Below are positions 4,167-60,201 of a stretch of 64,000 nucleotides of DNA, one piece after another. Source of the DNA: Octopus sinensis (Eukaryota); assembly GCF_006345805.1 (NCBI RefSeq), contig NC_043007.1, forward strand, positions 19,220,001 to 19,284,000, given 5' to 3'. Position 1 is the first letter of the stretch, and the number at the start of each line of letters is the position of its first letter. The position numbers were made by a program, and so were the translations under genes. The notes below the pieces were generated by a model. The model saw nothing but the letters and a program-made list of their open reading frames with translations. It was not told where the DNA came from and made no database searches.

Positions 4167-4578
4167 TCTTTCTCTTTTACTTGTTTCAGTCATTTGACTG
4201 CGGCCATGCTGGAGCACCGCCTTTAGTCGAGCAACTCGACCCTGGGGCTTATTCTTTTGTAAGCCCAGTACTTATTCTATCGCTCACTTTTGCCGAACCG
4301 CTAAGTGACGGGGACATAAACACACCAGCATCGGTTGTCAAGCAATGCTAGGGGGACAAACACAGACACACAGACATATACACACACATACATATATATA
4401 TATATACATATATACGACGGGCTTCTTTCAGTTTCCGTCTACCAAATCCACTCACAAGGCTTTGGTCGGCCCGAGGCTATAGTAGAAGACACTTGCCCAA
4501 GATGCCACACAGTGGGACTGAACCCGGAACCATGCGGTTGGTAGACAAGCTACTTACCACAGAGCCACTCCTGCGCCT
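4167..4578 (-). mobile_element. tRNA-derived SINE family A (~420 bp with an internal AT/CA microsatellite); representative copy
   Basis: Head gcaggagtggctgtgtggtaag...ggttcagtccc (A/B-box like). Other copies near 10375, 11660, 12318, 19520, 26370, 26955, 30860, 49720, 50063, 56985, 57365, 59950. Confidence 0.85.
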
Positions 4579-5144: not shown

Positions 5145-5519
5145 AAATAAAGTGGAATGACCACTAAAGTGGACACCTAATATGCTAAACAGAGACGTCA
5201 GATCACCAGTACCACGAAGAATGTGTTCTCAAGAAAAATCACAGCAAAACGCCAAAATGCAAAAATGAGCAAGAAAATGAAAATATATGAAATAAAACAC
5301 GATTACCTATGTACCAATGGTTTCACTTGTTAATATCTATGTATGCAAACATGAAAATATCTGCAAGAATCATCAATGTATTTATATATATGGTTATAAT
5401 CCATCTAGGAGAGAGCTTACATGTTTTTCTTATATGTACAATTTCGTAACTCCTATTAGTAAATAAAATATATGTAATGGTGAAGAATACCAAAAATTTC
5501 TTCCAATCTCTTGTTTTGA

Positions 5520-5552
5520 CACACACACACATACACACACACACACACAACA

Positions 5553-5595
<43 letters not shown>

Positions 5596-6152
5596 TATAT
5601 ATATAATATATATAATATATATACATATATATACACATATATATATATACACATATATATATATATATATATATAGATATATATATATATATATATACAT
5701 ACATACATACATACATATATATATATATATTATATATATATATACATACATATATATACATATATAAGAGAAGTGGGTGGGGCAAAAAAACTGGAAGCAA
5801 TACCATAAAGAAGTCAACAGAGAACAACAATAATTACTGAGGTTATATAAAACAAAATAATAGAAGCAGTAAAGAGAATGGAATCACGTGAAGGTGGGTT
5901 CAATTCCAGTGAGAGTCAGGGTGAGGGTTGCAGAAAACTATTTGTTTAGTTACATATAGCTATTGTGTGTGAGTTTGGGTGGGTATTATAAATATATGCA
6001 TATGTGTGTGTATATATATATATATATATACATACACACACACATACTTATACGCACATTCACACACACACACATACATACATATTTATGTATACATAGC
6101 TACATACATAAATATACATATATGTATGTATATACATATACATATATGTATG

Positions 6153-6195
<43 letters not shown>

Positions 6196-6210
6196 GTATA
6201 TATATATATG

Positions 6211-6252
<42 letters not shown>

Positions 6253-6375
6253 TGTATGTATATATATGTATATGTATATTATATATATATATATATATGT
6301 AAATATATATAGACACACAGACATTCAAATACATATACACAGAAGCACACATAAACACACACACACACACACATA
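5520..6375. repeat. (CA)n/(AT)n microsatellite blocks downstream of the ASL-like gene
   Basis: Direct read; two long interrupted AT tracts. Confidence 0.95.
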
Positions 6376-6552
6376 CAAGTTATTCTCCAAAAAACACGAA
6401 CAAGAAAACCCAGTCTATAACAAGTGAACACAATAAATAAATAAATTAATTTGTCAGAGATTCTTATAAAGTCCAAAGTTTTTTCTAACAAACGGTGAAA
6501 GGTGTTGGTAGGTGTGAGCATTCCAATGATTGGTTATTGATCTGCAGATTGA

Positions 6553-8202
6553 TTATCTTTGGAACGACATCCATTTCTTCAACTGATCTATTTGAAGCTG
6601 TACACTAGCGTGACTTGTCCCTCCCGGAAGTGTGTATTGCTCTACGCTGTTGTTATAATTCCATACAGATTTTACATCGAGGTCAAAAACAGGACTAACA
6701 GATCTAAGCTCAGCCAGAGAGAGTTTCGAAAAAGTGACCCCCTTTTTCTGTGACAGTCTGACACACATTCCAACCAGGCTGTGCGCCTTGTCAGCAGGTA
6801 GGCCCTTTCGTACCATGTAATATTCCAAGTCTGGCAATAACATATCTTCACTTAGGGAAGCTTCCATTTTGTCTGGGTTTATTTTCAAAGAAGAGAGGAT
6901 CGCTCTGGTTATTGGTAAAGCGTTCACAATTGTCTTGTAAATATCAAACATTCCTTTGGCATTTGATAAGAAATCATTGTTGTGTAGGTTTGAGAATTCC
7001 TTCAAGACACTCAACATGTCGGTGTATTCACCAAAGATGTGATTGGTTTTACCACGGATTTCTTCCAAGCTGCGAGCATTCTCGTTCGAAAAGCTACTGG
7101 CGTTATTTTGAACATTGTGTAGTGGATGGGAAAGTTCAACAAACCCGAAATCTTTCGTACTGTATAAAATAAGGTCATTAGCCAAATTGTGGAAGTGAGC
7201 TGCCATGATTGACGCCCAGGCAACATATTCAAAGATGATGTCTTGGTCGTTGACAGCGTCAATGCTGTTTTCTATGATGTCAGCAAACCCGAGCTCTTTG
7301 GCCAAAAACATTCGGTCAACCCCAAAAGGGTTTCCTGCTAGTGCCCCGCTTCCAAGTGGCAGCAAGTCAACTCGTGAAAGTAGATCCATAAGTCTTTCAA
7401 TATCTCTTTTGATTTTCCAACCGAAGCTAAGCAGCCAGTGACTCCATCTGATTGGTCGCGCTTGCTGCATCACGGTGTAGCCAGCCATGAGAACACCAAG
7501 CTCCTTCTCTGCCCGCTCAGTGATGACACCCAAAAGCTCAATCAGATCACTCTTATGAACGCTGATGGCATTTTTCTGCCACAGTCGAAGACTTGTCGCT
7601 AACTGGTCATTGCGATCCCAGCCAGCATTTAACTTATTTGCCGCTGAACCAATCAACTCTGCCAGGCGCCGTTCATTAGCAGCATGGACATCTTTATCAT
7701 CCGGCTTCAAGTCAAACGTCCCGTTTTCCCACTCCATTCCAATCATTTCAAGACCATCCAAAATGTTATGACACTCTTTTCTCGTGAGGAGGCCGACCCT
7801 TGTCAGGCTTTTGGCATAGGCCTTACTGCATTCGATGTCCTCTTTGAAGAGATTGTAATCAACAGTTTGAGCAATGCCATAGTTCTGTAGATTGTCTTTT
7901 GGAGAAGTTACGAGATGCGTTCCGTGGGACTTGGAACTGTTTACCACTGACGGTTGAGTGATGGCATCTTTCAGAGTCAAATGCAATATTTCGTGGAAGC
8001 TTTTGGTGAAATTATGTCTAAAACGGGTGCCGTTGGTGAGATTTGATTTTGAGGTCTTCTTGGTGGGAGTCGTCTGCGTTGACACTCTTGTCTTGCTGTA
8101 GAAAGCACTCATTGGACCCAGAACGAAAATCAATAGCAGTAGGGTCACCGTGAAGATGATCATGATGAATGATTTCATGAAAGAACGGTAAAGGCTCTGC
8201 AT
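6553..8202 (-). CDS. Argininosuccinate lyase-like protein, 549 aa, single coding exon; N-terminal hydrophobic anchor and stalk; catalytic motifs degenerate (probable pseudoenzyme)
   Basis: Uninterrupted ORF that aligns by eye to nearly all of human ASL (SKAY, ANERRL.ELIG, RNDQ, PIRWSHW, LPLGSGA.AGNP.GVDR, DLILY.TK.F.FV.LS, YY.VRKG.P, SVEQY...GGT). The supplied ORF starts at TTG 8235. The first ATG is at 8202, with an in-frame TGA upstream at 8250-8248. Symbol withheld because it is unlikely to be the ASL orthologue. Confidence 0.93.
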   Translation of the reverse strand: MQSLYRSFMKSFIMIIFTVTLLLLIFVLGPMSAFYSKTRVSTQTTPTKKTSKSNLTNGTRFRHNFTKSFHEILHLTLKDAITQPSVVNSSKSHGTHLVTSPKDNLQNYGIAQTVDYNLFKEDIECSKAYAKSLTRVGLLTRKECHNILDGLEMIGMEWENGTFDLKPDDKDVHAANERRLAELIGSAANKLNAGWDRNDQLATSLRLWQKNAISVHKSDLIELLGVITERAEKELGVLMAGYTVMQQARPIRWSHWLLSFGWKIKRDIERLMDLLSRVDLLPLGSGALAGNPFGVDRMFLAKELGFADIIENSIDAVNDQDIIFEYVAWASIMAAHFHNLANDLILYSTKDFGFVELSHPLHNVQNNASSFSNENARSLEEIRGKTNHIFGEYTDMLSVLKEFSNLHNNDFLSNAKGMFDIYKTIVNALPITRAILSSLKINPDKMEASLSEDMLLPDLEYYMVRKGLPADKAHSLVGMCVRLSQKKGVTFSKLSLAELRSVSPVFDLDVKSVWNYNNSVEQYTLPGGTSHASVQLQIDQLKKWMSFQR

Positions 8203-8411
8203 GATGGGTTTTGTAGAATTGATCAAAGAGCGCAATACGGAGGGAGATCAGTGAGATGTGATGGCTCGTTTCCAAGACGATGAGTTGGAAGACAGAACAA
8301 TGGTCATTAAAAAAACAATATAAAATGGGAAAATAAAACAAAATGGAATAAATGGAACTATTACAATAACAGGATGAAGACGGCCAAATTTCTTCCAGTT
8401 GGTCAGGCAAC

Positions 8412-8432
8412 CTGTGAAAGAGAAGTAAACAG
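8412..8432 (-). promoter_or_regulatory. Probable splice acceptor of a 5'-UTR intron of the ASL-like gene
   Basis: Minus strand reads gtttacttctctttcacag|gttgcc, a pyrimidine tract plus CAG about 210 nt upstream of the ATG. Confidence 0.55.
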
Positions 8433-8459: not shown

Positions 8460-8706
8460 CTTTACATACATACATACATACATACATACACACATATATA
8501 CATACATACACACACGTACATACATACATACATAAATACATACATACATACATACATACATACACACGTACATACATACATACATACATACATACACACA
8601 CACATATATACATACATACATACATACATCCACACACACACATATATATACATACACACACACACACATATACATACATACATACATACATACATACATA
8701 CATACA
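8460..8706. repeat. (TACA)n microsatellite
   Basis: Direct read. Confidence 0.95.
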
Positions 8707-9914
8707 TAATATATTTATCAAATACACATTATGATGGATATATATTGCAAACATAAAAATATTTCACATGCATGAAAAAAATTGATTTGATGCACTCAAG
8801 GGAGAGAGAGAGAGCGAGAGAGAGAGAGGGAGAGAGAAAGAGAGAAAGAGAGAGGGAGAGAGAGAGAGAGAGAGAGAACATGTATGATTTGTTTATTAGG
8901 TTTTTTCATCAATAAAATATGCATTTGGGCATGAGGCTAGTAATTTCGGTGAAGGCGGTAAGTCACTTAAATTGACCCAAGTACGCAACTGGTACTTATT
9001 TTATCGACCTCAAAAGGGTGAAAGGCAAAGCTGACCTCATCAGAGTCTGAACTCAAAACATAAAAACTGACCAAATCTCCAGAAATAGTTTCAATTGTCT
9101 TGCTTTTCTCTTGTCTATGATGTTCACTCTTGTAAGCTTTCTGCCAACCGACGTCTTTGGAATTTGTATGAACCCTTCTTTTATTTCAGGGAAGCTCTTT
9201 ATGCTACGGTGACCTCTTGCCTTGCTTGGGACAAGATCATCAGAAAAATCAAATAGACAATTTTCCCTTAATCAACAACGGCACATAAAAAAAAACACCA
9301 TCCGAGCATGGCCGTTCGCCAGCCTCGTCTGGCACCTGTGTCGGTGGCACATAAAAAGCACCCACTACACTCACGGAGTGGTTGGCGTTAGGAAGGGCAT
9401 CCAGCTGTAGAAACATTGCCAGATCTGACTGGCCTGGTGCAGCCTTCGGGCTTCCCAGACCCCAGTTGAACCGTCCAACCCATGCTAGCATGGAAAGCGG
9501 ACGTTAAACGATGATGATGATGAAAGAGATGAATGTGAAAACCTTTTAAACACTCTACGAGGGAATTGGCACGAACTGCATCAAGTACAGAACCATAACT
9601 GGAAAAACAGGCTGTTCAGGACAAACATAAAACCTTTCAAACTGGGTCTTTAAATAATAAATGAAAACAGCTGTAAATTGCCTGAAAGACTCTCAGTGAA
9701 GGGACATAAAAAACAGTGTAGGAAAACTCTAAATCTTCTGATGCTTACATGAACAACCACATTGCTAGGTAAGCACAAAAAAGTTGAAGCTACGCCATCA
9801 AAATACAGGGTGTTCAAAAAGTCTCTCTGCAGTAAGAGTTTTATTGTAAAATATTTCTAAGATGGTATAAGACTACAAAAGAATATATCAGACTTTAAAA
9901 AAAAATTATAGATA

Positions 9915-10214: not shown

Positions 10215-10576
10215 GCGGTGATGAATGAGTCGTCCTTCATTTTCAATACATAAGTTGACTCTTCTACACATGTTTTGAAATACATCTTGGTGAGTCAGGA
10301 TGAAAGCAATTCACTGTGGAGGGACTTTTTGAACACCCCATACAAATGAATATCTTGAGGGATTATTCTTTTATTTGTTTCAGTCACTTTGACAGTGGCC
10401 ATGCTGGAGCACTGCCTTTGTTTGAACAAATCGACCCCAGGACTTATTCTCTGTAAGCACAGTACTTATTCTATTTGTCTCTTTTGCCGAACTGCTAAGT
10501 TACAGGGATGTGAACACATCAACATCGGATGTCAAGGGATGGTGGGGGGGACAAACACAGACACAGACACACATAC

Positions 10577-10609
<33 letters not shown>

Positions 10610-10982: not shown

Positions 10983-11813
10983 AGATCACATCTGGCCAAT
11001 TTGAACATAAAATAAATAGAATATCTGAGTTGGACATGGTCAGTTTAAATGCTAAAAGGTTAAATAAGAAAAGCAGTTTGGAAATGGTAAAATTAAAACT
11101 TTAAAATGCCAAAATCGATTTCCATTTCAAGGGAAAACTTTCAGAGAAAACTAAATCTATTAATCTTATTAATTATAAACGTCAAATGAAGAGGAAGATT
11201 GCTTAGCAACCGCGTGGTTTCAGGTTCAGTCTCACAGCATGGCATCTACTATAGCCCCCGGCTGATCAATGCCTTATGAGAAAATTCGATTGGAGAAAAC
11301 TGTGTCGAAGCCTGTATAGTGTGTGTGTGTGTGTGTGTGTGTATCTTCGCCCCAGCACTTGCCAGTCGATGTTTACGTCTCCGTGACTTAGAGGTTCGGC
11401 AAAACGGACTGACAGAATTAGTGCCAGGCTTATAAATATAAGAACTGGGGTCGATTAGTTGAAGCAAACCCTTTAAGTCTATGTCCCAGCATGGCCGCAG
11501 TCCAATAACTGAAAAAAATATTTATAAAAAGAGGGGAAGAAACCATCCCCTTTACATGGAAAGAGGGGGGAAAAGACGAACTAAAGAGTTTTCTCCCTTT
11601 AACTACGTTCTCACAGGCCAGGACGCGTTGTTTTAAAATTTTTATTAAAGATTTATACAGAGGAGTGGCTGTGTGGTAAGTAGTTTGCTTACCAACCACA
11701 TGGTTCCGGGTTCAGTCCACTGCGTGGCACCTTGGGCAAGTGTCTTCTACTATAGCCCCAGGCTGATAAAAGCCTTGTGAGTGGATTTGGTAGACGGAAA
11801 CTGAAAGAAGCCC

Positions 11814-11863
<50 letters not shown>

Positions 11864-12974
11864 ATGTGTGTGTGTGTTTGTGTGTCTGTGATTGTCCCCC
11901 CAACATCGCTTGACAACCGATGCTGGTGTGTTTACGTCCCCGTAACTTAGCGGTTCGGCAAAAGAGACCGATAGAATAAGTACTAGGCTTACAAAGAATA
12001 AGTCCTCGGGTCGATTTGCTCGACTAAAGGCGGTGCTCCAGCATGGCCGCAGTCAAATGACTGAAACAAGTAGAAGAGTAGAAGGATAGGTTTCGGACAC
12101 GCCTTTTTGCAGGGGTTTCCATGACAACGACCTATAAGCTGTTCCGCCGTAGGAGGTAACCTTCCAAAACACCGAGTAGTACCAGATTGGAGACCTGACT
12201 GATATCTTGTACCATAGGGAACTCTGCTATAACGGCAAGGGCGCCTCTGACCTGATCGCCCGACCTACTTGAAATAGTGGCTTAAATCTCTCTCATATTG
12301 TAAGTAACCTCTTTTTTTTACTTGTTTCAGTGATTTGGCTATGGCCATGCTGGAGCACCGCCTTTAGCCGAGCAAATCGAACCCAGGACTTATTCTTTGT
12401 AAGCCTAGTACTTATTCTATCGGTCAATTTTGCCGAACAGCTAAGTTACGGGGACGTAAACACACCAGCATCAGGTGTCAAGTGATATTGGGGAAACAAA
12501 CACAAACACACAACATACACACATGCGTACACACACACATACACATATATATATATATATATACGTATATACGACGGGCTTCTTTCAGTTTCCGTCTACC
12601 AAATCCACTCACAAGGCTTTGGTGGGCCCGAGGCTATAGTAGAAGACACTTGCCCAAGGTGCCACGCAGTGGGACTGAACCCGGAACCACACAGCCACTC
12701 CTACGCCTATATAACCGTTTAAAAAAGAGGAAGGACGTTTAATACCATACTCTTGGATATATTGTGTCTGAAATAAACGAACAGAGTGAGAGAAACAATA
12801 AGGAAATAGATGTAAATGTCACGGTTGGAATGTCTTTGTCCATAAGTTTGTTTGGTCAGGTCTGACCACAGGGTAAAGAACACCCGCAACAGGGCTACAA
12901 CTAAAACCTTTGCGGCGTTTCTACAGGGCCTCACTCAACTTGCTAGAAATAACAACTAAATGTTCTTCAAAGTA

Positions 12975-15293: not shown

Positions 15294-16139
15294 AATTCAT
15301 CTTCTAATGTAATAATTCTGTTTCTGGCACACGGCCAGCAATTTTTTGAGGAGAGGGGAGAAGTCGATTACATCGACTCTAATGTTCAGCTGGGACTTAT
15401 TTCACCGACTCGTAAAAGAGGAAAGACCAAATCAAGCTCAGTGGTATTTGAACTCAGAACGTAAAGAGCCTGTCACCATGGATCAGTATGTGTGGTTGCC
15501 TGATGTTGTCGAGGTGGTGAACGAAGACATACTTCGTTGGTTGCATGAATAATTGATGCAAAACCTGCGAACATTTAATTCTTTTGTTGAGACATTTAAC
15601 TGAAATATTTATTGTTGCACATAAAGATGGTTGTCGATGGAGATTTACAGTTAACGATATTAATAATTACAGACTGGGAGAGAAACACTGTTCTGAGATT
15701 GCAGAAAGTTATCTTTACAACAATATGTCGGTTTAGCACATACGAAATCACTGCGTTCTCTTCGTAGCGACAAATGTCCTTGGTTGTCTGGCTTAGGCCG
15801 TGTGCACAAATATCTGGAATCATTAGAGAGATAAGAGTAGAGGAACCTGTCGCTGAGCTGCCTTCGACATTTTGCCTGGCAAGAAGAAAGACTTATGATT
15901 GAGTCGGCCGCTCTCAACGCTCTGCAAAGAGTTTAGGCGCCAAAACGGATTTTTCAGAGATTTCCTGACACGGATTTTCACTATTTTATCTCGGCAATAT
16001 TTTCCGTTCACACATCTGACCCCAAAGGGCATATTTCAAAAACGTATACATTATACTACTTCTACAGTTCTTTTAAGTCACTCTAATTTTATTTTTATGG
16101 ACAACAAACAAAAAAATATGTTTGCCAACCAACATGGAC

Positions 16140-17050
16140 ACTCGTGTCTGTTAGCCCACTCAACATCTACATACCGTGTCTATTTACGCAGCTAATTTCC
16201 ATACACTGTGTTTATTTGCTCAGCCAATATAAACACTGCACCTATTTGTCTCACAAATATCTACACACTTCATCGATTTGTCCAGTTAATTTCTACACAC
16301 CGTATCTGTTTACCCAGTCAGTATCTATATACCAAGTCTATTTGCCCATCTAATATTCATATATCAATATATTGTGTTTATTTGCTCAGCTAACATTCGT
16401 ACATGGAGTCTATTTGTCCAGCCAATATAGACAAACTGCGACTATTTGTCTAGCAAATATCTATAAACTGCATCTATTTGCCCAGTTAATATTCACATAC
16501 TCCGTTTATTTGCTGAGTCAACATCTACAAACCGTGTTTATTTGGCCATTTAATATCTACTTACCACATCTATTTGCCCGTCCATATTTACCCTTCCCGC
16601 CTAACTACAGATCATGTATACAATATCCAATTCGTCTCACCGATGTCTACACACCGTGTCTGTTTGTTTAGCCAATCAATAACTACACACCGCACCTATT
16701 TGCCCATCCACATCTGCCCTCCATGCCTATCTACATATCATATACACGATATCTATCCAGCTAAACAACATTTATCCACCGTGTGTCTATCTAGCTGTAT
16801 AAAACTAGCCATGTGCATCCAACTGAGATTTATAATTCATGTCCATCACGCAACCAGTCACCATCCACCAGCCACTATCTAACGGTTGAAGAGGAACAAT
16901 ATATATGTATTTATATATTATATATTATTATTATATATATATACAATCTGTGTCTATCCAGTTGATATCTTTCATAGGCTGTGCTTATCCGACAGAGATC
17001 AATAAACTGTGTCTATCTGATCAATATCCACAGATATTGGTGCCTATCTA
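16140..17050. repeat. Degenerate ~32-bp minisatellite
   Basis: A tattt(g)-like core recurs at 16181, 16213, 16243, 16275, 16307, 16339, 16379, 16411, 16443, 16475, 16507, 16539, 16571. Confidence 0.8.
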
Positions 17051-17347
17051 GCAGGCAAAAAACATTCCGTATTGGAAAGAAGGAACAAGTGATGCTGATG
17101 GAAAACTAATCAATGGAAACTCTGCTATATTCTAAGACTCGAATTTCATCAGTGAACAGACACCCTCTCACTCGGTTCCCCTCCCCCCGCTCCCGCCTAT
17201 CTGTTTCAATCTTTCTCTGGTTTAACCCCCCACCACCTCACTGACACTTGCCCCCGTATCAATAACAGAAGCCTCCCCTTCGTCTTCTCCCACCTCAACT
17301 ACACTTTCGTACCACTCTCCCTTACCCCCTACCTTTCTTTCTTTCTT

Positions 17348-17380
<33 letters not shown>

Positions 17381-18132
17381 CCGCCATCGATACCATAATT
17401 CCACCAATAATAGATATTCTTTGATCGCTAACTCACTTTCATAGACGCCCACCCCCATTTTGCTCCCCCTCTTCTCTTCACTTTTCCTCCCCCATCATGG
17501 TGGCGACATTAATAAACTCACTCTCTCTCTCTCTCCCTCCTTCTCTCCCTTACAATTCTTCGCTGCCAATTACCATAGTTCTGAGACTGATAAAAATATT
17601 ACACAAAATAACAAAATTGAGAAAAAATACGGGAGGGTAGCGACCTGCCAACTAAATACAGTAGCGTCTCACATATGTAATAGAGTCAGTTGGAAAAAAA
17701 TCGATTAAATTCGATTATCTATACACTTAGCAGACGAAAACTCCCTCTAAGAAACATCAAAGAAGGGAGATAATTCCAATAAGATCAATTAATTGAAATT
17801 TTGTTAAAATTTAAAACCAACAAAATGGTAGAGGACACATTTCTGTTTTATTGGATTTATTGAAGCAGATTCTCCTTGGCAAATATCACTGTCTTGGGCC
17901 CCGGGGCCAGCTGTCCGGTTTCCATGGCGTATAAGTAACCGAAATCACAATTTTTTTTCATTGAACAAGACGCCAGTCCGTCGCAGGGTGACCGATTTAC
18001 AGCTGAGTGGACTGGGGCAATGTGAAATGAAGCGTTTTCTTCAAGAACACATAACACCGTCCAGTTCCGGAATTGAAACCATGATCTCGCAACTGTGAGC
18101 ACAACACCCTAACCGCAAAGGCTAGTAATATA

Positions 18133-21818: not shown

Positions 21819-22289
21819 TGTGCAAGTGGCTGAGTACTCCACAGACATGCGTAACCTTAATGTAGTTTTGGGTGAGGTGAGACGGGAGAGGGATGACGCC
21901 CCACCCCCACCGCACTTCTCCACCATCACCACCACCACCACCACAACCACAGCTACGCTACCGAATTCTCACGAAGAATTTGTTAACCTTGAAAATTTAC
22001 CTGTACGTATTTTCCAAACTTGCACCTGATTCTTTCAGGTGTAAGAAGAGGAAACAAACTGTCGCATCCATCAAACCGTAAATTATAATGATAATAATAA
22101 TAATAATAATAATAATTATAGTAATGATGATGATGATGATGATGATAATAATGGTGATGATGAAGATCATGGTGATGATGATAATGATGTCAAGTTGTTC
22201 CCCAAACAGAAGGAATTTCGGAGAAGGCGTTCTGTAAGTTAAGAGATCAATATAGTATTGGAAACTAAAATTGGATTGGAATGAAGTCA

Positions 22290-22819
22290 AAGAGTTTAGA
22301 CGGGAGAGAAATGTCTTGGAGAAAGTCGTTGAGTTATTGTGTGAAGGGTGAGGGGAGAGGAAAGAGGAGAGATAGATAGAGAGAGGGGGGAGAGGGGAGA
22401 TGGAGATGAGAAAGAAGGGTGGTGGAGAGTGAGAGGGATGAGGAGAGGAAAAGAGGGTAGGAGAGTTAAAGATAAGAAATAGAGAGAGGAGAGAGGAGAG
22501 AGAGAGAGTTGAAGGGAAAATAAAATAAAAAAGATAGAATGGAAGTGAAAGGAAGGAAAACGAAAGTGTAAGAGAGAGAGAGAGAGATTCAGGACGATGG
22601 AGATGAGAGACAAGGGTGGTGGAGAGAGGGATGAGGAGAGGAAAAGAGGGTAGGAGAGTTAAAGATAAGAAATAGAGAGGAAGAGAAAGAGAGGGAGAGA
22701 GAGAGCAAGGAGAAGAGAGAGATTTGTATGGAAGAGAAAGAGAGATATAGTGTGAGGAAGACGAGAGTGAGAAGGGGAGCGAATGGATGGGAGGGAGGGA
22801 GAGTCTGAGAGAGAGAGAA

Positions 22820-22870
<51 letters not shown>

Positions 22871-22960
22871 TCTAACCAAATACGTCTGCTTTAACATTTT
22901 GAAAAGGAGTATTTTGTTGTCAAAGCAAAGGTGATGGGGGTGGATAGAGAAGGAGAGAGA
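22290..22960. repeat. Polypurine (GA-rich) low-complexity tract
   Basis: Strongly purine-skewed on +, with an internal ~80-bp duplication. Confidence 0.9.
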
Positions 22961-23029
22961 GGGTGTGTGTGTGTGCATGTGTGCATGTGTGTGTGTGAGT
23001 ATATCTGTGTGTATGTCTGTTCATATATA

Positions 23030-23595
23030 AGTGTCCGTGTATGTATGTATGCGTGTATATATGTATGTATGTGTGTGTGTATGTGTGTATGTATGTATGT
23101 GTGTGTATGTATGTATGTATGTATGAATGTATGTATTTTTCTCTTTTTTCTCTTTTTTTCTAGTTTCAGCTTATGAGCTGTGGCCATGCTGGGGCACCGC
23201 CATTAATGTATGTATGTATGTATGTATGTGTATGTATGTATGTATGTATGTATATATGTATGTATGTATGTGTTTGCATGTATGTGTATGTACGTATGTA
23301 TGTATGTATGCATGTATGTATGTATGTGTGTATGTATGTATGTGTGTATGTATGTATGTATGTATGTATGTATGTGTATGTGTGTATGCATGTATGTATG
23401 TATGTATGCGTGTATGTATGTTTGTGTGTATGTGTATGTATGTATGTATGTATGTATGTATGTATATGTATGTATGCGTGTATGTATGTGTGTGTGTATG
23501 TATGTATGTATGTATGTATGTATGTATGTATGTATGTTTGTATGTATGTGTGTGTGTATGTATGTATGTATGTATGTGTGTGTGTGTGTATTATA
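23030..23595. repeat. (TATG)n microsatellite, interrupted by a short SINE tail
   Basis: Direct read. Confidence 0.95.
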
Positions 23596-26500
23596 CGTAT
23601 GTGTTTGCCTGTGAGGGAGAGTGACGGAGGGGGAAAAGAGGTGTAGATTGTAACAGGAGAGATCGAATCGTATATATCATGTGATCGATAAATCAATGCG
23701 GTAACGGTGGAGTAAATTGGAGGAGGGCGAAGAAGGTGGTTTAAAAGTATTGTTGGGTAGAAAATGTGTAAATGTGTGTGTGTGTGTGTCTATAGATGCA
23801 TGTGTATGGAGTGGGGAAGTGGGTGGTGCCGTACCCCCAGCGCAGACGTTATAGAAGTTTCAGTATGGCCAGACAACTTAAGTATTTAACTCTTTTCTTC
23901 ATCCACCACCACCACCACCACCACCAACAACAACAACGTCACCACTACCACCGCCAACGCCGACCACACCATCATCGCCTCCACCTCCACCTCCACTTCC
24001 ACCACCACCACCACCAACATCCATTGCCAAAAACAACAACAAGCAATACTAGACGAGCCCCCACTACTACTACTACTACTACTGCTGCTGCTGCCCATGC
24101 TATTACTACTCTCACAACAGCAACAAGCGCCACCATGAAATTGCGCAGCTGGAGCGTGTGCCGTCCGGGGCAGCTCCAGAGTTTGCCTCCCCACCCTCGG
24201 GCCTGCGCTGCTTATACAAGATTATACAGGAGACCCAAAAGTGCTTCCCTCCACTCCACTCCAATAAAAGCGTCGTCCAGGGCGGAGGCGGACCGCCCCC
24301 TAGGGCCCTCCCTAGCTACACTGCAGCTACGACACATACTGCAGCAACAATAACAGCTAAAAACCACAAAACTAATTCACTTAGTACGACCACACTAGCG
24401 GTACTGTAACACCACCACCACCAACAGTAACATGACAAAACCGTAAGTACCACTAGAGTACTACTACCGCTTCCACTACATCATCAGTAACACTAGCACA
24501 ACAGTAGCATTACCCATACTGTACCACCTGAGTACTACTACAAATCTACAAACATCACTATTCCACAATACTTATTTACAATGGACAGATATGTGTCCTC
24601 ACTTTGTTTTTTGTTATCACAACGTTTCGGCTGATGTATTCTCCAGCCTTCATCAGGTGTTCTGGTGGAATTTCAAACTCAACCCTTTATTTGACTAATG
24701 GGGTACAATGTTCTCATTCCTGAGGTATGTTGCTGATGTTATTTTTCTGTTGATATCATTTTTTCAACAATAGCAGGGGCATTGTAGTATTGGAGGCAGT
24801 AAAAGGGTTCTGGTAGTTGTATAGAAGTGGTGTATCGCCTAGGTATCTCTTGCCGAGCAAATACAGTCTATGCAGACTTATACAGCAGATCCAAAAGTGT
24901 TGCGCCCATAAAAGCGTTGCTCGGGGCGGACCGAACCATTGCTGCCCCTAGCTATGCAATTGTACGTCACTAACTCCACTGAAATGTGCATGGATGTCAC
25001 AACATCTCATTGAGAAACACGACTGAATAGAAAAATATTTTATAATTGTGACAAGTTCTTTTAGGAATGGTCATGTGGTGAAAAAGTTTGCATCGTAACT
25101 ACGTGGTTTAGGGTATGATCTCACTGTGTGACATCTTGGAACAAGTATCTGCTATCATAGCCAGGCCCATCGCTAGATTTTAGTGTTTGCAGGAGCCGCA
25201 GAACATTTTGGACGGGACACTCTAATTCGCAATAATACGAAAGTAGATTTTCGGAAATACGAATCCCCGTAATTAAAAAAAAAAAAGTTTTGACGATTTC
25301 TTCGAATTTCATTTATACATCGATTAGGAATCGGTAATTTCTTTTCTCAAAATTTTCCATTTCTAAAAATTTCCATTTTTCAAAATTTCCACTTGCGGAA
25401 AACCTGAAGAATGTATTAATTTTTCCAGTGACAGCCTCAAGGGAAGACCAATGTGTGAAAAATATACTTCACTGTCAAATGTAGCTGCTAGCAAAACGAG
25501 TTGCTTAGTGAAACTAACCAATTTCTACCTCCTTCATTACACACACACACAATTTCCTGTCTCCGTTTCATAGTAGACAACGGACTGTAACTTTTTTATT
25601 CATTTACTTTTTCGAAAATTCTTTTCGAATTATGTTTTAAGCCTGGGAGACAATGACTACGCCAAAAAAAAAAAAAACCTAAAATGTTTTCCATTTGATG
25701 CCCACCACATTGGAGTGTGCAACGAGTCGTAACTTGTTAGGATTTAGAACTATTATTTATAGTCTTAAGTTTAAGGTTTTGGGTTAGGCCGAGGTTTTAC
25801 GTTTCGAATTTACGGGTCAGAATTTAGAGTTATATGAAGAAGGGTTGTACTTTTGAAAATTTTTACAGAATCGCAATCACAACCGTTTTGAGGAGAAATC
25901 GGAAGAAATTGTCGAAGAAAGAAACGAAAACCAGATGGTTCTGGTAATTCACTTGGTGTCCTACTTCTGAAATTCCATTAATTCTAAAATATTATGTTGA
26001 TGAAAATATTTGTTGATGATTTTTGTTTACGCTATTTAATCACTTCTGATATTTTAATAATATCGATATTTTAATCAATGTATGAATAATCTAGAAGGTT
26101 TGCCCTATATTTAAACCAAATGCAGTGAAAACGAATTCTAAAGTTTGTTAGGCTATTGAAAATTTGTAGACGAAATTTATAAAACAATTGTTAAATAATT
26201 TAATTAGTTTAATTAAATGAATTATATTCAATTAAAATCTGATATACGAAATTTATAAACTGATTGTAAAATGATTTAATTAGCAATTACTAACACAGTT
26301 ATTAGATAAATAAAAAAAAAAGCATTAAAATTAATTTAATTTAATTTGACTTATGTTTTATCATTTACAGATTTCAGTCATTAGACAGGGACCATGCTGG
26401 AGTACCGCCTTGAAAGAGTTTAGTCGAAAGAATCGACCCAGTATCCTTTTTTTTTTAATTCTAGCAGTCTTTTGCCGACCTGCTAAGTTACGAGCGCGTA

Positions 26501-26759: not shown

Positions 26760-27167
26760 AGTTTACTCGTGTCACTATCTAAGTGTCTAAGTATAACAAG
26801 ATTGCTATTTTGTTAATGTGTCATAAAATGCCGATATGAGAAAGATGACTTGAAAGACGCATTCTTTGCAGCGAATGTGGAGGATGCAGCATATAATTTG
26901 TAAACTTCTGGAAAAGCAGCCTTAAATGGATATAGGGACGAACAGACATCTATTCTTTTACTCTTTTACTTGTTTCAGTCATTTGACTGTGGCCATGCTA
27001 GAGCACCGCCTTTAGTAGAATCAAATGGACCCCAGGACTTATTCTTTGTAAGCCTAGTACTTATTCTATCGGTTTCTTTTGCCGAACCGCTAAGTTACGG
27101 GGACCTAAACACACCAGCATTGGTTGTCAAGCGATGTTGGGAGGACAAACACAGATATATAACATAT

Positions 27168-28748: not shown

Positions 28749-29346
28749 GCGGCGAGCTGGCAGAAACGTTAGCACGACGGGCAAAATGCTTAGCGGTATT
28801 TCGTCTGCCGTTACGTTCTGAGTTCAAATTCCGCCGAGGTCGACTTTGCCTTTCATCCTTTCGGGGTCGATAAATTAAGTACCAGTTACGCACTGGGGTC
28901 GATATAATCAACTTAATCCGTTTGTCTGTCCTTGTTTGTCCTCTCTGTGTTTAGCCCCTTGTGGGTAGTAAAGAAATAGGTATTTCGTCTGCCGCTACGT
29001 TCTGAGTTCAAATTCCGCCGAGGTCGACTTTGCCTTTCATCCTTTCGGGGTCGATAAATTAAATACCAGTTACGCACTGGGGTCGATATAATCAACTTAA
29101 TCCGTTTGTCTGCCCTTGTTTGTCCCCGCTGTGTGTAGCCCCTTCTGGGCAGTAAAGAAATAGGTATTTCGTCTGCAGGTACGTTCTGAGTTCAAATTCC
29201 GCCGAGGTCGACTTTGTCTTTCATCCTTTCGGGGTCGATAAATTAAGTACCAGTTTCGCACTGGGGTCGATGTCATCGACTGAATCCCTTTGTCTGTCCT
29301 TGTTTGTCCCTTCTATGTTTAGCCCCTTGTGGGTAGTAAAGAAATA
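28749..29346 (+). mobile_element. SINE family B, long-tail variant, as a head-to-tail trimer (184-bp period)
   Basis: Head gcggcgagctggcagaaacgttagc...gagttcaaattcc; tatttcgtctgc recurs at 28797, 28981, 29165. Family B copies are abundant across the window. Confidence 0.88.
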
Positions 29347-32300
29347 ACACACGCACACATATATACATATATATATATATGTAGGATGTCCATGTTTTCG
29401 CTCAGTAAAAGATTATTGTCTCCAGTATTTTCCCTAAGACTTTAGCTGACCCCCCCTTCTCCACCACCCTCGTCATCGATATCAATATATTGGCGTTTGT
29501 GACGATGATGGTAAAGAAGAGCAATGCCAGCTACAGTCCCCAGGGGGAGGGGGAAATGGAGACTTTAATCTTGTACAGAACGAAAATAAAAACAACATAT
29601 TGTGTATGTGTGTGTAAACATATTTACATTTCATCAGTACTACTCCTAATTTATTGCTGTTGTTGCTATTGTTCCAATTATTTGTTGCTGTGGATACTGT
29701 TTTTTGCTTTCATTCAGTATAATTTCCTTCGGTTTTCTATTATCTCCCGAAGGAATTTTTTGACCAACCTTTTTGGTTCATTTTTTTTTTTTGCTTCAAA
29801 ATTAATTACCTATTTCTTTACTACCCACAAGGGGCTAAACATAGAGGGGAGAAACAAGGACAGAAAAACGGATTAAGTTGATTACATCGACCTCAGTGCG
29901 TAACTAGTACTTAATTTATCGACCCCGAAAGGATGAAAGGCAAAGCCGACCTCGGCGGAATTTGAACTCACAACGTAACTGCAGACGAAATACCGCTAAG
30001 CATTTCGCCCGGCGTGCTAGCGTTTCTGCCAGCTCGCCGCCTTTTCAAAATCAATTACCGTTCTTGGTGCTGGTTTGAGAAGAAAAGTTAAGAGAATGAA
30101 GTCTTCAAAAGGTTTATTCCAGGAAGTAGTTTTTATTAACTGTACTTTCTCAATCCGAGGGGCATCATTGAAAAGTAGAGAGTAGGGTTAGGGTTAGGGT
30201 TAGGGTGGGACGTAATGGCATCCAGAGTCTCCACCTCATTTTGGCAACGGGTCCAATCATAGCTTCGAGTCTCACCTAAACTTTTCCTTCCGTTCTGTAC
30301 TCTACATGAGCCGTTCTTCAGCAGGTCCGGTCACTTGGCAACATATTGTCTTTCTTTTGTATGAGAAGAGGATGTTAGCGAAGGGTATATTGGATAATAT
30401 AATCTAAGATAAACTATAATTTCTGAAAAGGTGGGATAACCATGGCAAGAATGTCTTAAGGTGATAATCTGCTCGATCAGGGTTAACGTGAAACTAAACG
30501 ACAATAGTATGTGTGGCGAATTGGTTCCGGACCCCTGAGAGGAATTTTATCGGAAGGAACAAAGTTTCTTCCAGATGACGAATGGGTGTGGAAAAACGGA
30601 TGTTAAATGAAGACGACGATGATGATGATGATGATTTGCAAATTTATATTAATGAAAGTTTTGACCAATCAGTAAAATTAGAGATAAAAGGATATTTGCA
30701 GTGCAACCGTCTCCAATACTTTAATTGATATTATATTCTGAACGAACTGTTGTCCAATTAATTAGGTGCTCGTGTTAATGGTTTGAAATATTTTCATCAA
30801 AAAACCAGTGTAAAACTGAAATACTGATGAAATTTAATTCCAAATTATTATTAGAAGTGGCAGGAGTGGCTGTGTGGTAAGTAGCTTGTTTACCAACCAC
30901 ATGGTTCTGGGTTCAGTCCCACTGCGTGGCATCTTGGGCAAGTGTCTTCTGCTATAGCCTCGGGCCGACCAATGCCTTGTGAGTGGATTTGGTAGACGGA
31001 AACTGAGAGAAGCCTGTCGTATATATGTATATATATATGTATGTGTGTGTATGTATATGTTTGTGTGTCTGTGTTTGTCCCTCTAGCATTGCTTGACAAC
31101 CGATGCTGGTGTGTTTACGTCCCCGTAACTTAGCGGTTCGGCAAAAGAGACCGATAGAATAAGTACTGGGTTTACAAAGAATAAGTCCCGGGGTCGATTT
31201 TCTCGACTAAAGGCGGTGCTCCAGCATGGCCGCAGTCAAACGATCGAAACAAGTAAAAGAGTAAAAGAGAGAGAGAAGAGTATATAAAATATCTTAATAA
31301 TTCTCAGTATCATAACGGCGTTCACATATCTTTTATCTTTTACTGGTTCCAGTCATTGGATTGCGTCCATGCTTGAGTATCGCTTTGAGGAATTTTTAGT
31401 CGAATGAATCGACCTCAGGACTTACTTTTTTGAAGCCTGGTGCTTATTCTATCGGTCTCTTTTACCGAATTGCTAAGTTACGAGAAGGTAAGCCTCAAGA
31501 CTGGTTGTCAAGCGGTAGTGGGGGACAAAGACACACACACAATGGACTTTTTTTTAGTTACCGTTTACCAAATCCACCCAGAAGGCTTAGTTTGGCCCAA
31601 GGCTACAGTAGACGACATTTACCCAAGGTCCCACAAAGTAAGACTAAACTCGGAACCACGTGATTGGGAAGCAAACTTTTTACCACACAGCTACGCCCGC
31701 GCCTATAAAGAATGACCGAATTCCACGCTTAAAGCACCGGTGGGCAGGTAATAGTGGTACTGCTTGGTAAATGTTTGCCTCAAGAGATTGTTTTCACCAG
31801 TAGAGGTATCGTGACAGGTGTTTGTTAATAAATTTATATTAGTGCTAACACGCTATCTTAAAGAAAGCGGGATGATCTAACATTTTTTAAACACTATATC
31901 TAAGACGGTAAAGTGTGAAGTGAGATATATTAAAGCTGCTATTTCTTGCTTATCGTGCAGCCATGTAGAAACTCTTTGGTATATTAAACTGAATAGGAAA
32001 TTGTTGGCAGCAGTTGCGGAGGGGTAAAAAAAGTAAGAAATATTTTTTTACATATATTTTTTATTTTTAATTTATTTGTTTCAGCCATTGGACAGTAGCC
32101 ATGCCGAGGGAACTGCACTGAAGGGTTTAGTCGAACAAATCGACTCCAATATTAGATTTTAAAATCTGATACTTATTCACGTTGGCTCTTGTGCTGAACT
32201 ACCAAGTTGCAGGGATATAAACAAACTAATACCGGCTGTCAAGCTAAAGAGGGAACAAACACAAACACGAAAACACACATACAAAGCATTGGTAGGTTCG

Positions 32301-34260: not shown

Positions 34261-36727
34261 TTCCTAGGTTATCACTCACGCAGTCTATTATGAATTACTC
34301 GTTTCAATCAATGGACTGCGGCCATGCTGCAGCAACGCTTTTGACGGGCGTAGTCGAACAAATCAACTTCATTGCTAAGTTTAAACAAAAAAAAAATCTT
34401 GTACACATTCTATCGATATCTTTTGTCGAACCGCAAAGTTGCGGGGGACATAAACAAACCAGCACCAGTTGTCAAGCAGTGCGAGTGAGGGACAAATAGA
34501 CACAAACATATAAAAATATATGGCGTTCTTTCGATATTGAGCAATCTTTCGGTACAAGTACCATAACTGCCAATTACTGTTTGTTTACATTTGAAAAAGA
34601 AGATCGTCACTTTCCGTAAAGTGTTTTTTTATATATGTGGGGTTAGGGTTAGGGTTAGGAGTGGGGGAAGGCTTTCCTTTTTCTTCAGAAATGTAACTAA
34701 ACCCATGTGGGTTTATAATTGGCAGTTATGTTACTTGTACCGAAAGATCGCCATTTATGTGATGATGGAAGGTTGTGTACTAATATACAAAGGAAAGCCA
34801 AAGTATACATACACGACGGTCTTAGCCCACAAATTCCATCAACAAAATCGATTCATAATGCACTGGTTGACCCGAGCCTATCGTAGAAGACACTTAGCCA
34901 AAGTGACGCGCGGTGGCACTGAATCCGAAACGGCGTTGTTGTTAAGTGAGCTTTTTAACCACAGTCATAGCTACGCCGATATAGTTGAGGATTCATCCTC
35001 GCCCAACGCCCAAGCATTTTCATGACATTTACACCAAGACCAATCGATTCATAATGCACTGGTTTCCAGTAAAACGAAGTCAGTGGATGTTAATGTCCCC
35101 TCACCTCAACTTTGCACAGATTTATATTTTTTATCAAAGCCATTTGTGTCATCGTTTCTTTTTCGGGAGTTGTGAAACCTGGATTACAATAGAAAAACTC
35201 TCTTTTTCCGAAGCTGGAAGGGTGTGACTCTAAGACAAAATTTGGCTGCTATTTTTTGTATTTTGCAAGTCGAGTTACACCGTAGAGCAGAATTTTTCGA
35301 AGTTCTTTGTCGCGACTCATTTTATTTATCTCGCGATCCACCGAAGGGTCAAGACCCACAGTTTGAAAAACCATGGTTTATATTCGGCACTTTGACCCCA
35401 TTTGCGTTTTTTTCCTTCTTTTCTTGTCGCGACTCATTTTATTTATTTCGCGACCCACTGAAGGGTCGGGACCCAAAAAACGCTGCCGTAGAGGTTCTCT
35501 CGTTGGACTGATCAGAGATGAGAGTTGTTTCAAGCAGTCGCCCTTCATCGAATCGAAGAAATTAGAGCAGTTTTGGAAATTAGAGTCGTTTTAAATGCAC
35601 AAGATTCGCGTTTAATTATTAGAAAAGCACTGATATAGGCGCAGGCGCAGGCGTGGCTCTGTGGTAAAGAGTTTGCTTCCCAAATCACATGGTTCCGGGT
35701 TCAATCCCATTGCGCCTGCATAGAACTTTGGGCAAGTGTTTTCTGCTATAACCTTGAGCTGACCAAAACCTTGTAGACAGAAAATGTAAGAAGTGCGTCG
35801 TGATATTTGTGTGTGTGTGTGTGTGTGGGTGTGTGTGCGTGTGTGTGTGTTTCTCTCCCACCACCGCTTGACAACCGGTGCTGGTATGTTTACGTTCCCG
35901 TAACTTAGTGATTCAGCAAAAGAGACTCACAGAATTAGTACCAGGCTTTAATAAGTAAATAAGTTTTTGGGTCGATTCATTCGACTAAAAACTCTTCAGG
36001 GTAGTGCTCCAGCATGGCCGCAGTCAAATGACTGAGATAAGTTAACGAAAACATAAAAACTACATCCTGCCATAAAGGTGTGAAGCTGAGGTGAACCCCA
36101 GATGCACAAGAATTACCAGAACAGGAACGAATTTTCGCATCCCCTGCCCCGCCACTGCGTCCAGGTAACGATTGTAATCGCGTACTAGCGAATTCCGATC
36201 GTGTAGTAAAGGACACTCGAGAAATATAAGTAAATCACTCCGTCCACAGACCTGCCACATGAATCAAGGAACAAGTCAAGTGCGGGTCGCCAACTCGGAA
36301 AAGCGTGCAACCTTGCCCCAAGTATTTCAACACACCTAACTGCCGTTCAAGAATTTGAACCTGGAGATCTCCATTTCCAGCGACTTTGAGGACCACCTCC
36401 CAGTGGTGTTGGGCGTCAACGAAGAGCCCTCGACTACAAGACGATCAAAGTTTTTCTTTTTTTTTCTTCCAAGGTCTGGGGTCTCCCACCCCTAAGCACT
36501 AGACCATCACCTAATCACCCTTACCCGTCTTGTTGCTTAACAACAACAACAACACACCTAACTCAAGAAATGAAAGCACATATATTCGTATCGTTCACAG
36601 GGTTTAGTTAACTCAAAGGTTAACAAAGCCCAACCGAAATGGGTAAGTTTGGCGATGGCCCTTTTATGACAGGAGCATATTTTCGGATTTGACAGACATG
36701 ACAGGTCGAGCTTCCATGGCTTCTCTA

Positions 36728-56820: not shown

Positions 56821-58180
56821 TGAGTAGCAATCTCTTCATATTTTCATTTTTTAGATGTCATGCATGTTATCATAACCTTAATATATTTTCTCATGTTCCT
56901 TTTCAATTGTTATATGTCCCCACATGTTTTGTAGTGTCCCCTCTATAGGATGCCTTTATGGCAATTTAAAAGAAATAAAGTAGCTTACTTCTCAACCACA
57001 TGGTTCCGGGTTCAGTCCCACTGTGTGGCACCTTGGGCAAGTGTTTTCTACTGTAGCCTCTGGCCGACTAAAGCTTTGTGAGGGGATTTGGTAGACGGAA
57101 ACTGAAAGAAGCCCATCGTATATATATATACATATATATATATGTGTGTGTTTATTTGTCTACCCACCATTGCTTGACAAAACCGATCTTGGTGTGTTTA
57201 CGTCCCCATAACTTAGCTGTTCGACTAAAGAGACCAGTGAAATAGGTACTAGGCTTACTAAGAATAAGTCCTGGGGTCGATTTGTTCGACTAAAGGCAGT
57301 GCTCCAGCATAGCCATAGTCAGATTACTGAAACAAGTAAAAGAAAAAGAAAAAATATATTCTATTTGTTTCAGTCATTTGACTGTGGCCATGCTGGTGCA
57401 CCACCTTTAGTTGATCAAATCGACCCCGGGACTTATTCTTTGTAAGCCCAGTACCTATTCTATTGGTCTCTCTTGCTGAACCACTAGGTGACGGAGACGT
57501 AAACAGACCAACATCGGTTTTCAAGCGATGTTGGTGGGGACAAACGCAGACACACAAACATATACATGCACACACACACAAACACTATATATATATATGA
57601 TGGGATTCTTTCAGTTTCTGTCTCTCAAATCCACTCATAAGGGTTTGTTCGGCCCAAGGCTATAACAGAAGACACTTGCCCAAGGTGCCACGCAATGGGA
57701 CTGAACCCGGAACTATGTGGCTGGTAAGCAAGCTACTTACCACACAGCCACTCCTGCACCTATATATATATTTATATATACAGGTTGAGACACAGTTACT
57801 CTAACGCATCTGCCTGATCAGGGCATCTCGGGGCTAAATAACAATATCAGTAAAAAACCAAAAAGAAATACAAAAAAGCAACAACAAAACAAAAGTAGAG
57901 GAATTAGTTTTTTTATTTCTTTATCTTTTTTTTTTGTTTTGTGTCTCTTAATCCATAATTATAATTATTTAATTTATTTAATTTAAATTTCTTTTTTTTT
58001 TTTTAAATTCTTTTCAATTAGCGCAAGGTTATTTAAGTAAGGGAGGAGAGGAGCAAAGTTCACGGAGGGGCAGCGGGGCAGGGAAAGAGCGTGAGGGGGG
58101 AAAGAAATAGTGATGGCATGACTGAATGAGCAACGTTAGATAAATAGTAAGATTATTATTATTATTATTATTTTTATGTA

Positions 58181-60138: not shown

Positions 60139-60201
<63 letters not shown>

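Follow-up and report, generated by a model that had tools for sequence, protein, structure and literature searches.

An intronless, anchor-bearing paralogue of argininosuccinate lyase with a remodelled active site in octopods

The delta1-crystallin of birds and reptiles is a soluble cytosolic protein encoded by a tandem duplicate with introns; it keeps His160, the Ser-Ser (SS) loop and all catalytic residues of argininosuccinate lyase (ASL), and its inactivity is due to subtle changes in the N-terminal part and in loops. In ASL itself, His160 is the catalytic centre (PMC12818424, PMC2779060), linked to Glu294 and Lys323 as a network (PMC2779060); 20 active-site residues are mentioned for the enzyme (PMC12818424), and the SS-loop signature GSSxxPxKxN is present in all characterised members of the superfamily (PMC11880804). 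Here we describe an ASL-like gene from the window, a 64,000-nucleotide stretch of Octopus sinensis DNA (G000:C11:19220001-19284000) in a 2.72-Gb octopus assembly. An earlier sequence-only reading of this stretch had suggested a pseudoenzyme or a neofunctionalised lyase kept by selection, a view that gains support from a ratio of nonsynonymous to synonymous substitution rates (dN/dS) of ~0.03 and from intact orthologues. We put the probability at about 60% that the octopod protein is a coleoid-specific ASL retrocopy which now acts as a non-lyase, membrane-tethered binding or scaffold pseudoenzyme.

An ASL fold with an altered active site

The reading frame of the gene runs uninterrupted on the minus strand from an ATG at 8202-8200 to a stop codon at 6555-6553 and takes in the stretch 7060-7640 that had first drawn notice; the 549 codons previously noted as still open are indeed open. 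The gene and its folded domain are located as follows.

6553-8202, minus strand: coding sequence (CDS) of the ASL-like paralogue, complete and free of introns, with 549 codons and a stop (list of open reading frames (ORFs) and translation).
6556-7863, minus strand: domain of the ASL/delta-crystallin fold, residues 114-549 (Pfam; PDB, E 1e-120; predicted local distance difference test (pLDDT) mostly >90; dN/dS 0.008-0.016).

The window protein is identical to the cluster member P0129 and 99% identical to XP_014774460 of O. bimaculoides, and two O. vulgaris entries are identical to it or nearly so; NCBI records label the octopus protein 'argininosuccinate lyase'. Pfam assigns Lyase_1 (PF00206, 6e-57) and ASL_C2 (PF14698, 6e-15, more precisely 6.4e-15), the latter also above the cut-off. 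The best PDB matches are duck delta2-crystallin and human ASL (E about 1e-119 to 1e-120), and the delta-crystallin structures 1u15, 1hy0 and 1i0a are among the best structural matches. An AlphaFold2 monomer model built from a 70-sequence alignment has a mean pLDDT of 81.8, with most of the domain above 90, and reaches a TM-score of 0.93 against 1k7w (Foldseek). By sequence and by its three-domain helical fold the protein belongs to the aspartase/fumarase (Lyase_1) superfamily, and it carries the ASL-specific C-terminal domain ASL_C2; its identity to canonical ASLs is 44-46%, and 44% to the canonical octopus ASL. The structural motifs PIRWSHW, LPLGSGALAGNPFGVDR, YYMVRKG and SVEQYTLPGGT are all retained. 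The likeness to ASL with an intact scaffold, first proposed from the letters alone, is therefore upheld by Pfam, by the PDB matches and by the predicted model.

We compared the active site with 171 canonical ASLs from animals, fungi and bacteria, many molluscs included; columns are numbered by a 464-residue vertebrate ASL with GYTH at 157-160, as in human ASL. Five segments of the former active site differ.

7603-7632, minus strand: region C1, remodelled; LNAGWDRNDQ, residues 191-200, against canonical LHTGRSRNDQ.
7465-7482, minus strand: region C2, remodelled; GYTVMQ, residues 241-246, with His160 replaced by Val244 (codon 7473-7471) and Thr159 kept.
7240-7251, minus strand: NDQD for SERD (R236Q), residues 318-321, from the alignment to canonical ASLs.
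7072-7128, minus strand: former SS loop (C3), HPLHNVQNNASSFSNENAR, residues 359-377; 19 amino acids in place of the 17-amino-acid DAYSTGSSLMPQKKNPD.
6955-6990, minus strand: substrate-binding segment, remodelled; NLHNNDFLSNAK, residues 405-416, against STYNKDLQEDK.

All of these lie where they had been read before, including the exchange of the family signature for an unrelated stretch two residues longer. Region C1 carries the changes H108N, T109A, R111W and S112D and keeps R113-N114-D115-Q116. The column of His160 is 100% His across the 171 canonical ASLs and Val in the octopus protein. The signature GSSxxPxKxN is absent: HPLHNVQNNASSFSNENAR is without its Gly, Pro and Lys, bears an N-A-S sequon and is predicted to be disordered (pLDDT <50 at residues 361-373). 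In the substrate-binding segment NLHNNDFLSNAK we find Y321H, K323N, Q326L, E327S, D328N and K329A. Further replaced conserved residues are Gln165 (Q165R) and K287, the loop 275-291 is exchanged as a whole, and the N-terminal arm is altered at M21, F24, N25 and S27 (S27A), with WGGRF gone. K315 and E294 are kept while E327 and K323 are changed, leaving Glu294 as the only persisting member of the His160/Glu294/Lys323 network. New histidines are found near the former active-site segments, including H336-x-H338 and H407. Following UniProt and the delta2-crystallin literature, we take Y321, Q326, K329 and S27 to be ligand contacts; among the lost residues are most of the basic and polar groups with which the canonical enzyme binds the substrate carboxylates and performs acid/base catalysis.

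Among 144 columns that are at least 97% conserved in the 171 ASLs, 52 are changed in the octopus protein and six in its cuttlefish orthologue (described below). The changes fall preferentially on the active-site segments, with 36 of 55 conserved columns altered there against 16 of 89 elsewhere (Fisher p=1.3e-8), in agreement with the concentration of divergence that the sequence-only reading had perceived. The possibility that such substitutions are common in molluscan ASLs is rejected, the columns concerned being 97-100% conserved across the comparison set. His160, the SS loop, K287, Y321, K323, Q326 and K329 are all replaced, yet the description of the catalytic machinery as 'erased' is too strong. 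Arg113, Asn114, Asp115, Gln116, Thr159, Asp87, His89 and Glu294 (human numbering) are unchanged, and because of these retained residues the pocket is better regarded as remodelled than as wiped.

Origin, orthologues and selection

A search of the whole genome returns two ASL loci only. The second is a canonical ASL at C25:11863662-11892629, the separate gene that the earlier note had proposed to look for, with 15 exon-sized matches over 29 kb, most of which are 81-96% identical to the exons of the O. bimaculoides canonical ASL. Its exons encode intact LHTGRSRNDQ, GYTHMQ, GYTHMQRAQPIRWSQW and STGSSLMPQKKNADSLE. With a 15-exon canonical gene on C25, the reading of the window gene as the only ASL of the genome is rejected. 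The canonical octopod proteins P0014 and P0021 themselves have an acidic, Pro-rich N-terminal extension of ~50-65 residues with a KRPRNSE motif, which other molluscan ASLs are without. The ASL-like paralogue occupies a single coding exon in four genomes: in the Octopus window, in O. bimaculoides, in Argonauta hians and in a cuttlefish genomic contig. An intronless copy of a multi-exon parent is the standard signature of retroposition, and by this signature the window gene is evidently an old retrogene, that is, a processed copy of ASL. At such an age neither a poly(A) remnant nor target-site duplications would be expected to persist.

Intact orthologues are found in O. bimaculoides, O. vulgaris, a further Octopus species and Argonauta, and also in cuttlefish. 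The cuttlefish protein (P0004 cluster, which includes 'argH' of Acanthosepion pharaonis, CAE1276449) has the same N-terminal layout of anchor and stalk and is likewise encoded without introns; a search with no more than its first 95 residues recovers the octopod proteins at E 1e-12 to 1e-13. It keeps WGGRF, LHTGRSRNDQ, GYTHLQ, STGSSLMPQKKNPDSLE and STYNRDLQEDKE, and is presumably an active membrane-tethered lyase. One cuttlefish genomic gene call, P0127 (533 amino acids; L007:9954-10000), is truncated: an in-frame ATG, that of MRNLHRSFMKS, lies just upstream and aligns with mRNA contigs. A maximum-likelihood tree unites the anchored proteins in one clade (99/95), with the cephalopod canonical ASLs as its sister group (96/88). 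The tree also places a Trichoplax ASL with an end branch of 0.9 beside the anchored cephalopod clade (90/78), almost certainly through long-branch attraction; this placement makes the support for cephalopod canonical ASL as the exact sister group a little weaker.

The tree assigns 3.23 substitutions per site to the octopod stem as compared with 0.41 to the cuttlefish stem, and the octopod crown is tiny. The Tajima relative-rate test, with the octopus canonical ASL as outgroup, gives 89 octopus-specific against 27 cuttlefish-specific changes (p=8.6e-9). Since the cuttlefish orthologue is anchored yet retains the full set of catalytic motifs, anchoring came first and catalytic loss later, on the octopod stem.

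The loss was followed by strong conservation. In Nei-Gojobori counts, the window CDS differs from that of O. bimaculoides by 72 synonymous and 10 nonsynonymous changes (dN/dS 0.03), from that of another Octopus species by 111 and 14 (dN/dS 0.03), and from that of Argonauta by 248 and 75 (dN/dS about 0.03, with dS saturated). For the ASL domain alone, the comparison with O. bimaculoides yields 55 synonymous and two nonsynonymous changes (dN/dS 0.008), and the octopod comparisons of the domain range from 0.008 to 0.016. The departure from neutrality is pronounced (binomial p <1e-34). A catalytically intact cuttlefish pair likewise has a dN/dS of 0.03; between octopods and cuttlefish, synonymous sites are saturated. 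Five octopod sequences have the ORF open over 549-556 codons, and at the nucleotide level Argonauta resembles the window only across the CDS, from 4 nt before the ATG to the stop codon. Disrupted orthologues or a dN/dS near 1, for which the earlier note had advised a check, are thus not what we find.

Constraint is distributed unevenly along the protein. Regions C1 and C2 are identical across four octopod sequences, C1 despite 10 synonymous differences to Argonauta over residues 188-206, and the substrate-binding segment 405-416 has a single difference (A/I) between Octopus and Argonauta. W195, D196, V244, R249, H338, N342, H407, N409 and L412 are invariant from Octopus to Argonauta. The former SS loop is the sole fast-evolving part of the domain: the loop of Argonauta is different, seven residues longer and Asn/Thr-rich (dN 0.29). 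The SS loop, which in the canonical enzyme is mobile, shuts the active site and bears the catalytic serine, has here escaped sequence constraint, and the rest of the former pocket is held invariant. Outside the domain, the stalk is the least constrained part (dN/dS 0.16-0.22). The octopod protein combines the loss of catalytic residues with purifying selection across four octopod sequences, a combination that would mark it as a pseudoenzyme; having the fold and lacking the catalytic His and the SS loop, it is best filed, as far as its residues tell, as an ASL-derived pseudoenzyme and not as an ASL.

Anchor, stalk, transcripts and surroundings

About 113 residues precede the ASL domain, and canonical ASLs are without them. 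They fall into two parts.

8101-8202, minus strand: N-terminal anchor, residues 1-34, MQSLYRSFMKSFIMIIFTVTLLLLIFVLGPMSAF; single hydrophobic helix of signal-anchor type.
7864-8100, minus strand: stalk, residues 35-113; disordered, rich in Ser/Thr/Pro/Lys, with a degenerate remnant of the ASL N-terminal arm.

The Kyte-Doolittle average over 19 residues peaks at 2.79 in residues 11-29 (SFIMIIFTVTLLLLIFVLG), the only such segment in the protein, and the AlphaFold2 model has a helix at residues 2-34. Between Octopus and Argonauta the anchor shows 0 nonsynonymous and 18 synonymous changes, and 26 of its 34 residues are identical to cuttlefish; judged by these counts it is the most conserved part of the protein. 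Residues 36-105 are predicted to be disordered (pLDDT <50, about 30). Two N-x-T sequons of the stalk (alignment columns 58 and 68) recur in each of the seven anchored paralogues, with N and T conserved and the middle residue free (L/M/V and F/S/A); in the new loop, Octopus and Argonauta each have a sequon as well (NAS and NKT, respectively). The cuttlefish anchor, flanked by charges of +3 on its N side and +1 on its C side, points to an N terminus in the cytosol. On these features the favoured topology would be that of a type II signal-anchored protein with a lumenal or extracellular domain.

The anchor and stalk have no apparent source elsewhere. A word-indexed search of 5.8 billion clusters with cuttlefish residues 1-95 returned only the anchored clade, and octopus residues 1-113, scanned in full with HMMER against 1.84 billion representatives, brought up only the anchored clade and P0190. 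This single extra match is a low-complexity repeat protein and was set aside.

Transcripts are seen in cuttlefish. The RNA-type contigs L004, L015, L016 and L020 have the CDS in common; upstream of it they part from the genomic-type contig L019 precisely where a polypyrimidine-CAG acceptor precedes the ATG by 45 nt, which identifies them as spliced mRNAs whose 5' untranslated region (5'UTR) has an exon of its own. Two of these mRNA contigs, L015 and L020, differ from each other over the first ~35 nt, which suggests alternative first exons or start sites. The octopus gene has a candidate counterpart.

8203-8423, minus strand: 5'UTR part of the coding exon (8203-8410) and candidate 3' splice acceptor, ttacttctctttcacag followed by G (8411-8423), read from the sequence.

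The candidate acceptor, at ~8411/8410, is 208 nt upstream of the ATG, and another Octopus species (L005) has preserved both its tract and its CAG; the octopus 5'UTR may be spliced here. Expression in octopus is suggested by the selection on the CDS and by existing annotated transcript variants. One O. vulgaris isoform, P0130 (631 amino acids), departs from the ASL-like CDS after Met463 (ATG-GTACGA, window ~6813) into a repetitive C-terminal tail. A 39-bp tandem repeat of ~21 copies lies at 1261-2080 of the window, its minus strand encoding the IAVANSRHREGLQ units of that tail; the tail is probably an alternative or spurious splice into satellite.

The coding exon is flanked by long TA/CA-rich and (TACA)n microsatellites at 5323-6430 and 8463-8708, where the short-read contigs of another Octopus species end. 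Farther away, the window holds a tandem array of 184-bp units with a tRNA-like box (GGTTCAAATTCCGCCGAGGTCGAC) at 28795-29346, and dispersed matches to an O. bimaculoides flank (L008:2387-3007) near 4167-4442, 10366-10577, 11319-12600, 26943-27153, 30992-31539, 35818-36057, 57163-57585 and 60024-60173. The array and the dispersed copies each look like an abundant repeat of the short interspersed element type, and are possibly separate elements; ARAGORN calls no tRNA genes in the window. GC skew reaches extremes of -0.36 at 16001-18000 and +0.57 at 22001-24000, the latter interval overlapping an (ATGT)n array at 23206-23591. The remaining long ORFs of the window match no Pfam family.

Competing explanations and known systems

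In our preferred account, a processed ASL mRNA would have inserted before the octopod-cuttlefish split, and the retrocopy would have acquired a 5'UTR exon together with a new N-terminal extension made of a very hydrophobic helix and a disordered stalk of ~80 residues. The extension would tether the ASL-fold domain to a membrane, most likely on its lumenal or extracellular side. On the octopod stem a burst of substitutions would have taken the lyase machinery apart: Val replaced His160, the general base, an unrelated Asn/Ser-rich loop replaced the mobile Ser-Ser loop with the catalytic Ser281 and Lys287, and the residues that hold the substrate carboxylates and guanidinium group (Arg111, Ser112, Tyr321, Lys323, Gln326, Lys329 and Ser27) were exchanged. 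Purifying selection no weaker than that acting on the canonical enzyme would then have kept the new pocket unchanged. The resulting protein most likely no longer cleaves argininosuccinate; it is presumably oligomeric, and its rebuilt pocket or its surface may hold a different partner. A more specific form of this account, which we hold doubtful, would make the protein a cell-surface or lumenal tetrameric binding module with the former active site rebuilt as a conserved ligand or catalytic site. Such a module, an equally tentative suggestion, might serve as a sensor or receptor for guanidino or amino-acid-like compounds or perform a chemistry free of the SS loop, its ancestor being a membrane-tethered ASL still active in cuttlefish.

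Several observations weigh against the preferred account. The Logan contigs contain no octopus transcript evidence (L005 and L006 run colinear with the genome until they stop in microsatellites), and no polyadenylation hexamer occurs within 650 nt of the stop codon. The flank charges of the octopus anchor, +2/+3 on the N side and +4 on the C side, do not favour a type II orientation, and a lumenal ASL in cuttlefish would have no obvious substrate supply. Members of the superfamily are homotetramers in which three subunits contribute to each active site; E327 and K323 are reported to stabilise the double dimer (PMC2779060), and both would be unavailable for this in octopus (E327S, K323N). The persisting Arg113, Asn114, Asp115, Gln116, Thr159 and Glu294 could permit the binding of small molecules or some unusual chemistry. 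Two protein searches, which did not extend to squid or Nautilus genomes, returned no orthologue from either group, and the dating of the retrogene therefore depends on the tree and on anchor homology.

The main rival to a non-lyase binding or scaffold protein is a new enzymatic chemistry, and a tether that faces the cytosol comes second. A neofunctionalised enzyme, its rebuilt pocket catalysing a different reaction on a non-dicarboxylate substrate at the membrane or in the secretory pathway, would suit the invariance of the replaced pocket residues, which a specific site would explain better than a passive scaffold, as well as the new histidines near the former active-site segments (H336-x-H338 and H407). 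The superfamily offers precedents for new chemistry in the Tad1 decarboxylase, CMLE and CreD, but all characterised members, these included, keep the SS loop (PMC11880804), whereas the octopod protein has lost it and has in its place the one drifting segment, with indels between Octopus and Argonauta. We consider this explanation unlikely. A dead subunit on the endoplasmic reticulum or mitochondrial outer membrane, facing the cytosol and binding canonical ASL or proteins of the arginine/nitric oxide (NO) pathway to localise or damp them, would agree with the octopus flank charges, which do not favour a lumenal C terminus. It would also agree with the intact tethered ASL of cuttlefish, which would make most metabolic sense in the cytosol, the site of argininosuccinate synthesis, and with the non-catalytic role that mammalian ASL is said to have in the nitric oxide synthase (NOS) complex. 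ASL active sites are built from three subunits (PMC12818424), so that mixed tetramers would be poisoned. Against such a tether stand the two sequons conserved in an otherwise fast-evolving stalk, the further sequon of the new loop (NAS, NKT), the cuttlefish charges that favour a cytosolic N terminus, and an identity to the canonical octopus ASL of only 44%; on balance it seems distinctly improbable.

A still-working argininosuccinate lyase with substitute residues would accord with the NCBI label, the fold, ASL_C2 and the retained R113/N114/D115/Q116, T159 and E294. It has to contend with Val at position 160, with the absent SS-loop signature, with the replacement of K287, Y321, K323, Q326 and K329, positions at which missense changes abolish human ASL function in yeast (PMC12818424), and with the intact canonical ASL elsewhere in the genome; we hold it very improbable. 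A decaying processed pseudogene with its frame open by chance would explain an intronless copy of a multi-exon parent with lost catalytic residues. Such decay is at odds with the open ORF in five octopod sequences, with the 72 to 10 and, in the domain, 55 to 2 ratios of synonymous to nonsynonymous changes (p <1e-34), and with a conservation between Argonauta and Octopus that ends exactly at the ends of the CDS; dN/dS and the intact ORFs rule this reading out, and we give it next to no credence.

Our literature search found no paper on this paralogue, on its accessions or on a membrane-tethered ASL. If the preferred account of a tethered, non-lyase pseudoenzyme is right, the locus offers a datable transition from enzyme to pseudoenzyme for which the parent enzyme, the anchored but intact form in between (in cuttlefish) and the remodelled outcome (in octopods) all survive today, and in which the steps of anchoring, catalytic loss and re-freezing, in this order, are separable for experiment. 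It would also reveal a membrane-tethered form of a textbook cytosolic enzyme of the urea cycle, and the few cephalopod innovations whose origin can be traced would be joined by a protein that arose from a retrogene and is restricted to one lineage. The label 'argininosuccinate lyase' on the octopus protein would then mislead metabolic reconstructions of arginine, NO and octopine in cephalopods.

Among known systems, the canonical cytosolic ASL (EC 4.3.2.1; human 1AOS/1K62 and the octopus C25 gene) shares with the window protein the three-domain all-helical fold, ASL_C2 and 44-46% identity; it differs in having no anchor or stalk, a multi-exon gene and a complete catalytic set. The anchored ASL of cuttlefish is closer, an orthologue with the anchor 26/34 identical and with the stalk sequons and intronless CDS in common, but it has full catalytic motifs and only 6 of the 144 near-invariant columns changed, against 52 in octopus. 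Type II Golgi and ecto-enzymes resemble the protein in architecture only: they too have a short N-terminal tail, a hydrophobic helix, a disordered glycosylatable stem and a globular domain of enzyme fold, but no sequence relationship connects them to the octopus protein, whose own topology is a prediction. Mammalian ASL, which reportedly holds the NOS complex together in a non-catalytic role (an observation attributed to Erez et al. 2011), is a precedent for the ASL fold as a structural organiser independent of catalysis; there, however, one soluble, competent protein does both jobs, and no link between NOS and the octopus protein has emerged. Avian delta1-crystallin comes closest as a precedent, being likewise a duplicate of ASL that is retained for a non-catalytic purpose and has its fold intact. 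The octopus protein differs from it in being encoded by a retrogene, in its membrane anchor, and in the loss of the catalytic residues themselves.

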